Shown here one piece after another: positions 17,464 through 29,009 of a stretch of 64,000 nucleotides of DNA. The DNA lies in contig NC_043019.1 of NCBI RefSeq assembly GCF_006345805.1, forward strand, positions 18,289,360 through 18,353,359. Direction: 5' to 3'. A program made the position numbers and the translations under genes. Under the pieces are notes generated by a model, which was given only the letters and a program-made list of their open reading frames with translations, had not been told where the DNA came from and made no database searches. Source of the DNA: Octopus sinensis (Eukaryota). Position 1 is the first letter of the stretch; each line of letters starts with the position of its first letter.

Positions 17464-29009
<11,546 letters not shown>

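Follow-up and report, generated by a model that had tools for sequence, protein, structure and literature searches.

What is an SDR gene kept for once the tyrosine of its YxxxK motif has gone, and is such a gene still maintained by selection? The question is raised by a stretch of 64,000 nucleotides from Octopus sinensis (hereafter the window), in which two DHRS11-like genes stand in tandem, copy a upstream of copy b. An initial annotation had noticed that copy a reads HFFSATK where its paralog reads HFYSATK, and had interpreted copy a as a retained, cofactor-binding but noncatalytic SDR. Both motifs are read directly from the sequence, as CAC TTC TTT TCT GCA ACC AAA in copy a and as CAC TTC TAC AGT GCA ACT AAG in copy b, with TTT and TAC at the residue in question. 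The accompanying remark that A-to-I editing cannot make TTT encode Tyr is right, as the bases of the codon show.

Both gene models were rebuilt from paralog self-comparison and splice sites (Table 1). Copy a comprises seven exons with an open reading frame of 786 nt and 261 codons for amino acids, its introns, like those of copy b, are all GT-AG, and its protein is identical to the RefSeq entry XP_029650093.1 of Octopus sinensis. The intact frame, the GT-AG junctions, the TGxxxGxG and NNAG motifs, and the remaining Asn, Ser, and Lys, as listed by the initial annotation, are all found in the rebuilt model. XP_029650093.1 and XP_029650032.1 are both named "dehydrogenase/reductase SDR family member 11-like," a label that in current annotation would, probably wrongly, imply enzyme activity for copy a; the RefSeq entries for copy a (XP_029650093.1 and XP_014769982.x) are computational models only. 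Copies a and b share 76% identity. Their exons 4 differ at 38 of 130 bases, and a recount places 25 of these at third, 8 at first, and 5 at second codon positions, in agreement with the earlier statement that most are third-position changes. Four features go beyond the initial annotation: Ser for Thr in PGxxxT, the altered C-terminal tail, the gene conversion of exon 2, and the weak donors of exons 1 and 5. The serine after Phe/Tyr is encoded by TCT in copy a of the three Octopus species (22959-22961 in the window) and by AGT in copy b (50215-50217) and Argonauta, a switch of serine codon family needing at least two base changes.

Table 1. Features of the tandem DHRS11-like genes and their surroundings, in window coordinates
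Feature	Position	Strand	Description
Region collinear with O. bimaculoides	~90-8400		3' part of the NAC-domain gene and downstream flank
Copy a	17464-29009	+	7 exons
Copy a exon 1	17464-17595	+	Met1 to Glu44; TGASTGIG glycine motif, Arg38
Copy a exon 1 donor	17596-17601	+	GTTTGG
Gene-conversion tract, copy a	18936-19196	+	261 bp, exon 2 and intron flanks
Copy a exon 2	18980-19183	+	Asp63, NNAG; within the gene-conversion tract common to copy b
Copy a exon 3	22002-22096	+	Asn114, helix E; Leu118 of the family replaced by Pro
Copy a exon 4	22913-23042	+	Ser146, Phe159, Lys163
Copy a motif HFFSATK	22950-22970	+	
Copy a Phe159 codon	22956-22958	+	TTT, replacing the catalytic Tyr of YxxxK
Copy a exon 5	24303-24395	+	PG motif, substrate loop of usual family length
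Copy a Ser196 codon	24327-24329	+	replaces the invariant Thr of PGxxxT
Copy a exon 5 donor	24396-24401	+	GTTTGA
Copy a exon 6	28688-28753	+	
Copy a exon 7	28944-29009	+	tail VNDILMKSTEQRPKISCDLSA and stop
RVT_1 ORF fragment	33145-34017	+	retroelement
RVT_1 ORF fragment	38109-39443	-	retroelement
Homolog of the O. bimaculoides linker exon	40683-40815		1-bp deletion creating a stop
Copy b	44703-63940	+	7 exons, 250 aa, identical to XP_029650032.1
Copy b exon 1	44703-44834	+	
Gene-conversion tract, copy b	47912-48172	+	partner of 18936-19196
Copy b exon 2	47956-48159	+	
Copy b exon 3	49176-49270	+	
Copy b exon 4	50169-50298	+	
Copy b catalytic Tyr codon	50212-50214	+	TAC
RVT_1 ORF fragment	57531-58843	+	retroelement
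Copy b exon 5	61068-61151	+	
Copy b exon 6	62733-62798	+	
Copy b exon 7	63899-63940	+	

To place the substitution among relatives, the orthologous loci of O. vulgaris, O. bimaculoides, and Argonauta hians were compared and their coding sequences extracted. An intact 786-nt copy a with TTT and conserved splice sites is present in O. sinensis, O. vulgaris, and O. bimaculoides, that is, in three independent assemblies (GCA_006345805.1, GCA_951406725.2, and GCA_001194135.2), and TAC occupies the position in copy b of O. sinensis and O. bimaculoides and in the single Argonauta gene. The agreement of the three assemblies and the two substitutions that separate TAC from TTT exclude, for all practical purposes, that the Phe is a private allele or an error of sequencing or assembly, possibilities that the initial annotation had allowed for. 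The Phe is fixed in all three Octopus species compared, as the earlier reading had needed.

Copy a matches the Pfam family adh_short (PF00106) with an E value of 3e-45 and 154.5 bits (cut-off, 26.6), and copy b is also a strong match. Among PDB entries, copy a is closest in sequence to human DHRS11 in complex with NADP (1xg5; E value 2e-89, 54% identity), followed by an insect farnesol dehydrogenase (7w61). Among the best 120 database matches, those that carry a name are almost all DHRS11 or DHRS11-like, with one farnesol dehydrogenase and several entries called "hypothetical protein." Outside cephalopods, the named DHRS11 relatives, from molluscs, brachiopods, crustaceans, and vertebrates, have 53 to 58% identity to copy a, and the cephalopod sequences form one clade with 100% bootstrap. 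AlphaFold2, given the family alignment, models copy a with a mean pLDDT of 94.2 and only residues 255 to 261 disordered, and the best Foldseek match of this model is again 1xg5 (TM score 0.94, rmsd 0.8 A). On sequence and predicted fold, copy a is a DHRS11 paralog, a classical SDR of the SDR24C type. It agrees with human DHRS11 (SDR24C1) in length class, cofactor motifs, and the HF[YF]SATK context, and differs from it in having Phe for Tyr, Ser for the Thr of PGxxxT, MKST for MRPT, and eight additional C-terminal residues. DHRS11 is an NADPH-dependent reductase with 17beta-HSD activity that has been assayed with isatin (PMC9696374). Relatives of DHRS11 act on steroids and farnesol, and copy a could thus bear on cephalopod steroid or isoprenoid metabolism.

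How unusual is the loss? In an alignment of copy a with 101 DHRS11-family relatives, residue 159 is Tyr in 101 of the 101 others and residue 196, in PGxxxT, is Thr in 101 of 101; copy a alone has Phe and Ser. With such a column, the loss of the Tyr lies far beyond chance. Copy a further differs by Leu118Pro, Arg247Lys, and Pro248Ser, the family tail MRPT having become MKST, followed by the eight-residue extension. Unchanged are the Gly motif (TGASTGIG, residues 12 to 19), Arg38, Asp63, NNAG (residues 89 to 92), Asn114, Ser146, Lys163, and the PG motif, with TGASTGIG and NNAG both in invariant columns. Measured against the catalytic tetrad of a classical SDR, copy a fails at Tyr159 only, the other three residues being kept.

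In a broader family sample, the Tyr is absent, after correction of alignment errors, from 7 of 148 representatives of 50%-identity clusters (proteins P0273, P0300, P0258, P0275, P0296, P0190, and P0226). Lingula anatina, several Schistocerca species, and Hetaerina americana all have His, Timema tahoe has Ser, and further contig-derived sequences have Trp or Asn; in Schistocerca the loss is conserved across at least five species. These relatives are like copy a in lacking the same Tyr, but none has Phe in its place, and most also lack the catalytic Ser. Within the sample, Tyr-to-Phe occurs in copy a alone, which is also among the few that keep Ser, Asn, and Lys. Such losses in DHRS11- and farnesol-dehydrogenase-like lineages are independent, and with about 5% of the sampled DHRS11-like clusters Tyr-less, they suggest a recurrent, unstudied route to noncatalytic function; we found no characterization of any Tyr-less DHRS11-like relative. 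Two other proteins, P0217 and P0286, had appeared to be Tyr-to-Phe relatives through BLAST misalignment, and MAFFT shows YxxxK kept in both. The Tyr-less P0190, which has an LKS tail like that of copy a, was considered as a squid ortholog and rejected, as it resembles copy a no more than it does proteins of other phyla.

Selection on the two genes was estimated by the Nei-Gojobori method between O. sinensis and O. bimaculoides. This is the single informative pair, as O. vulgaris has hardly diverged from O. sinensis (dS 0.006). Over all exons, copy a has a dS of 0.143, a dN of 0.015, and a dN/dS of 0.105 (Fisher P = 2e-9), and without exon 2 the values are 0.124, 0.016, and 0.128 (P = 4e-6). 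For copy b, all exons give a dS of 0.146, a dN of 0.029, and a dN/dS of 0.198 (P = 1e-6). The purifying selection on copy a that the initial annotation had read from exon 4 is thereby borne out, at a dN/dS of about 0.10, below that of the Tyr-bearing copy b (0.20). Codon-bootstrap 95% confidence intervals, restricted to codons common to both copies (copy a point estimate there, 0.094), are 0.03 to 0.21 for copy a and 0.09 to 0.39 for copy b, with none of the copy a replicates reaching a dN/dS of 0.5. Exons 3 to 5, which carry Asn114, Ser146, Phe/Tyr159, Lys163, the PG motif, and the substrate loop, hold one nonsynonymous codon change in copy a and 10 in copy b (Fisher P about 0.001 to 0.008), and exon 4 of copy a has none between the two species. 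Judged by this pair, copy a is, since the species split, more constrained than copy b, and exactly at the enzyme pocket.

The longer term looks different. Without exon 2, dN to Argonauta is 0.30 for copy a versus 0.15 for copy b, and the excess in copy a is concentrated in exons 5 to 7, which encode the substrate loop and the tail. A relative-rate test with Argonauta as the outgroup gives 31 versus 7 changes, a significant difference that is confounded if the Argonauta gene is the ortholog of copy b; when the consensus of a distant outgroup is used instead, the derived changes number 17 and 9 and do not differ significantly (P = 0.12). As synonymous sites are saturated (dS 1.3 to 2.5), no stem-branch dN/dS is given. 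The pattern that these substitutions trace for copy a is one of an apparent early burst of change followed by stasis.

These results bear on the reading of copy a as a pseudogene, decaying or unexpressed, whose intactness is only apparent. It has lost a catalytic residue, and two of its splice donors, those of exons 1 and 5, are weak or nonconsensus (GTTTGG and GTTTGA, where the corresponding junctions of copy b have GTAATT and GTGTGT). The same weak donors are, however, identical in all three Octopus species, the reading frame and splice sites are intact in each, and dN/dS is 0.10, so that this reading is highly improbable and close to refuted. From its dN/dS and the constraint on exons 3 to 5, copy a is not decaying; it is, as far as coding sequences can tell, a functional, selectively maintained gene.

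The same constraint weighs on a second idea, that copy a is an enzyme-derived lens crystallin or other bulk structural protein. Its one precedent, an analogy drawn by the initial annotation, lies in the S-crystallins and Omega-crystallins of cephalopods, which derive from the enzymes GST and ALDH with activity lost or reduced. The analogy fits poorly with the tight conservation of the active-site and substrate-loop exons, since an active-site region more constrained than that of copy b would be unexpected in a bulk structural role. Unlike copy a, which is single copy with no expansion, these crystallins have other folds, massive lens expression, and, in the case of the S-crystallins, expanded gene families. 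We therefore consider co-option of this kind very unlikely. What stands of the initial interpretation is the intact gene, the fixed Phe, the purifying selection, and the cofactor motifs and fold; the crystallin or structural role is unsupported and is set aside.

The YxxxK Tyr is the acid/base of SDRs, and Tyr-to-Phe mutants are usually nearly inactive; some, such as those of dihydropteridine reductase, retain measurable activity. Because this role of the Tyr is established for classical SDRs, we infer that the canonical reaction of copy a would be abolished or greatly slowed and that the gene is probably retained for something still requiring its pocket. Cofactor binding need not be affected: the Foldseek matches of the copy a model include E. 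coli FabG Y151F, crystallized with an NADPH fragment (1q7c), and with the fragment bound in that mutant, Tyr-to-Phe by itself does not prevent cofactor binding. The best explanation, to which we assign a probability of roughly 0.55, is that copy a is a maintained, noncatalytic DHRS11 paralog that acts as an NADP(H)- and ligand-binding protein or as a subunit of mixed oligomers. Copy a keeps the Rossmann fold in its predicted structure, all cofactor motifs, and the tetrad Asn, Ser, and Lys; it has exchanged its acid/base Tyr for Phe and the nicotinamide-contacting Thr of PGxxxT for Ser, and its substrate loop and C-terminal tail have diverged strongly. On this proposal, NADP(H) and a hydrophobic ligand would still be bound in the conserved pocket, normal Tyr-dependent proton transfer would be impossible, and the protein would serve a noncatalytic role, either in binding or sensing or as a partner of copy b in mixed oligomers.

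A natural case of the same substitution is HSDL1, whose YxxxK Tyr is Phe. It is like copy a in being a conserved, Tyr-less protein of classical SDR type and unlike it in belonging to an HSD17B3/12-like family, in occurring across vertebrates, and in not lying in tandem with an active parent. In the passage of PMC11209984 that cites Meier 2009, HSDL1 is described as inactive on the substrates tested yet conserved among species.

Two observations count against a pseudoenzyme: tight conservation of the active site and substrate loop is equally expected of an active enzyme, and copy a keeps Ser, Lys, and Asn, while most natural Tyr-less relatives have also lost Ser. The main rival to the noncatalytic reading is that copy a is still an oxidoreductase, a neofunctionalized enzyme rather than a pseudoenzyme, with a noncanonical mechanism or a new substrate. 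Ser146, Lys163, or water might supply the proton, or the new substrate might be one that needs no general acid. Conservation of the pocket fits this view equally well, as does the retention of all cofactor motifs beside the three tetrad residues; selection holds the exons of the catalytic residues and the substrate loop more tightly than their counterparts in copy b, and the loop and tail diverged strongly after the duplication and were then frozen. Set against this are the Tyr in 101 of 101 close relatives, the near-inactivity usual in SDR Tyr-to-Phe mutants, and the inactivity described for HSDL1 on tested substrates, which together leave an active enzyme with altered chemistry a serious but on balance unlikely alternative.

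Copy a and copy b offer a natural experiment, an active SDR beside a Tyr-less tandem duplicate under stronger constraint. If copy a is a true cofactor- or ligand-binding pseudoenzyme or a regulatory subunit, it would supply an animal example for the small set of SDR pseudoenzymes. A protein search with exons 3 to 7, including Logan, returned no transcript or transcriptome fragments of copy a and no other cephalopod orthologs, the O. vulgaris ortholog being the only close match. A literature search for octopus DHRS11 and for the accessions of the copies found nothing relevant.

When did the two copies part? The genes are tandem neighbors in all three Octopus genomes, and the order NAC-domain gene, copy a, copy b is conserved between O. 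bimaculoides and the window. The upstream NAC neighbor is recognized from the collinearity of one end of the window (Table 1) with the O. bimaculoides locus, in blocks of 82 to 90% nucleotide identity. Argonauta has a single gene at the corresponding slot, and no remnant of a second copy was found in the flanks of its locus. Trees are a poor guide to the order of events: neighbor-joining trees with bootstrap group copies a and b at 92% when all columns are used, a grouping due to gene conversion in exon 2; without exon 2, copy b groups with Argonauta at 68% and with copy a at 32%. A rare change is more telling. A three-residue deletion in the substrate loop is common to copy b of the two Octopus species and the single gene of Argonauta (15602-15685 of the compared locus) and is found in no other of 102 aligned sequences, copy a being of usual length. 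The deletion suggests orthology of the Argonauta gene with copy b and loss of copy a in Argonauta. From the common loop deletion, the duplication is likely to predate the Octopus-Argonauta split, with later loss of copy a in Argonauta.

The conversion tract spans 261 bp, of which 260 are identical between copies a and b in O. sinensis, compared with 77 to 80% identity in the other exons; the corresponding tract in O. bimaculoides is 93.7% identical between the copies. Exon 2 dS between the copies is 0.00 and 0.09 within the two species, and 0.20 between species for either copy. As the divergence within species is below that between them, conversion has recurred independently in each lineage. 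A recent conversion of copy a by copy b in O. sinensis is suggested by the amino-acid states, which are LLAVK for copy a of O. vulgaris, LLVLK for copy a of O. sinensis, and LLALK for copy b. The converted exon encodes Asp63 and NNAG, which are part of the cofactor site, and exon 4 with the Phe is unconverted. Its escape may reflect selection or simply lower identity.

The locus occupies 46 kb here and 12 kb in O. bimaculoides, partly through insertion of retroelement fragments. Three RVT_1 fragments (Table 1) sit between the two genes and in the 10.8-kb intron 4 of copy b, the latter in a G+C-rich block at 56 to 60 kb. The O. bimaculoides entry XP_014769982.2 (13389-18591 of the compared locus), of 557 aa, runs from a into b by read-through, with a 111-nt linker exon between the two. 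A covalent a-b fusion protein was considered and rejected: the homologous linker in the window carries a 1-bp deletion that creates a stop, and the fused frame is thus not conserved. In all likelihood the linker either belongs to copy b as an exon of its 5' untranslated region or stems from read-through transcription.

Within the noncatalytic reading, copy a might specifically be a subunit of mixed a/b tetramers, its remodeled tail helping to shape the pocket of copy b. Heterotetrameric SDRs, namely BbsCD of Thauera, the alpha2beta2 petunia benzaldehyde synthase, and HSD17B8/CBR4, have pseudo-subunits, which have lost a tetrad residue, are kept for assembly, and complete the pocket of the partner with the C-terminal tail (PMC13418739 and references 29 and 30 therein). 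Copy a resembles them in adjoining an active paralog and in having a remodeled tail; the petunia beta subunit differs in having lost Lys rather than Tyr and in its identity of about 30% to alpha, versus 76% for the octopus pair. Copy a most likely adds to a known kind, that of natural Tyr-less SDRs such as HSDL1 and of heterotetramer pseudo-subunits. Besides the tandem arrangement in three Octopus genomes, mixed tetramers are favored by helices E and F, the usual SDR interface, which are very similar in a and b in the alignment, by the change of MRPT to MKST with eight further residues, and by the precedent of BbsCD and the petunia enzyme, in which the active subunit has its pocket completed by the tail of its inactive partner (PMC13418739). 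The added tail residues are, however, predicted to be disordered, tight conservation of copy a's own pocket would not be required, and the fused a-b frame of O. bimaculoides is not conserved in O. sinensis; we regard such tetramers as doubtful. A fuller version, which we put forward as speculative, holds that copy a could be the dedicated noncatalytic subunit of an octopod a2b2 DHRS11 heterotetramer, tuning the steroid or isoprenoid reductase activity of copy b through its remodeled tail and a pocket that is conserved though chemically disabled, with a tandem duplication before the Octopus-Argonauta split and recurrent exon 2 conversion keeping the cofactor-binding halves matched. If this were true, BbsCD and petunia benzaldehyde synthase would have their counterpart in an animal.

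Further copies or parts of copies occur at these loci. A third gene, b-prime (XP_029650003.1), is located outside the window, about 25 kb downstream of copy b (CM016881.1, 18378307-18408201). It differs from copy b by a single residue (V27G) and has near-identical exons with introns of very different size. It either goes back to a very recent tandem duplication or is a duplicate introduced by the assembly. In O. vulgaris, intron 2 of copy a (14484-14546 of the compared locus) contains a partial extra copy of copy a exon 3, a piece of 62 bp that matches bases 1 to 62 of O. sinensis copy a exon 3 at 100% identity, and the deposited O. vulgaris model CAI9739799.1 (234 aa) omits part of exon 2.
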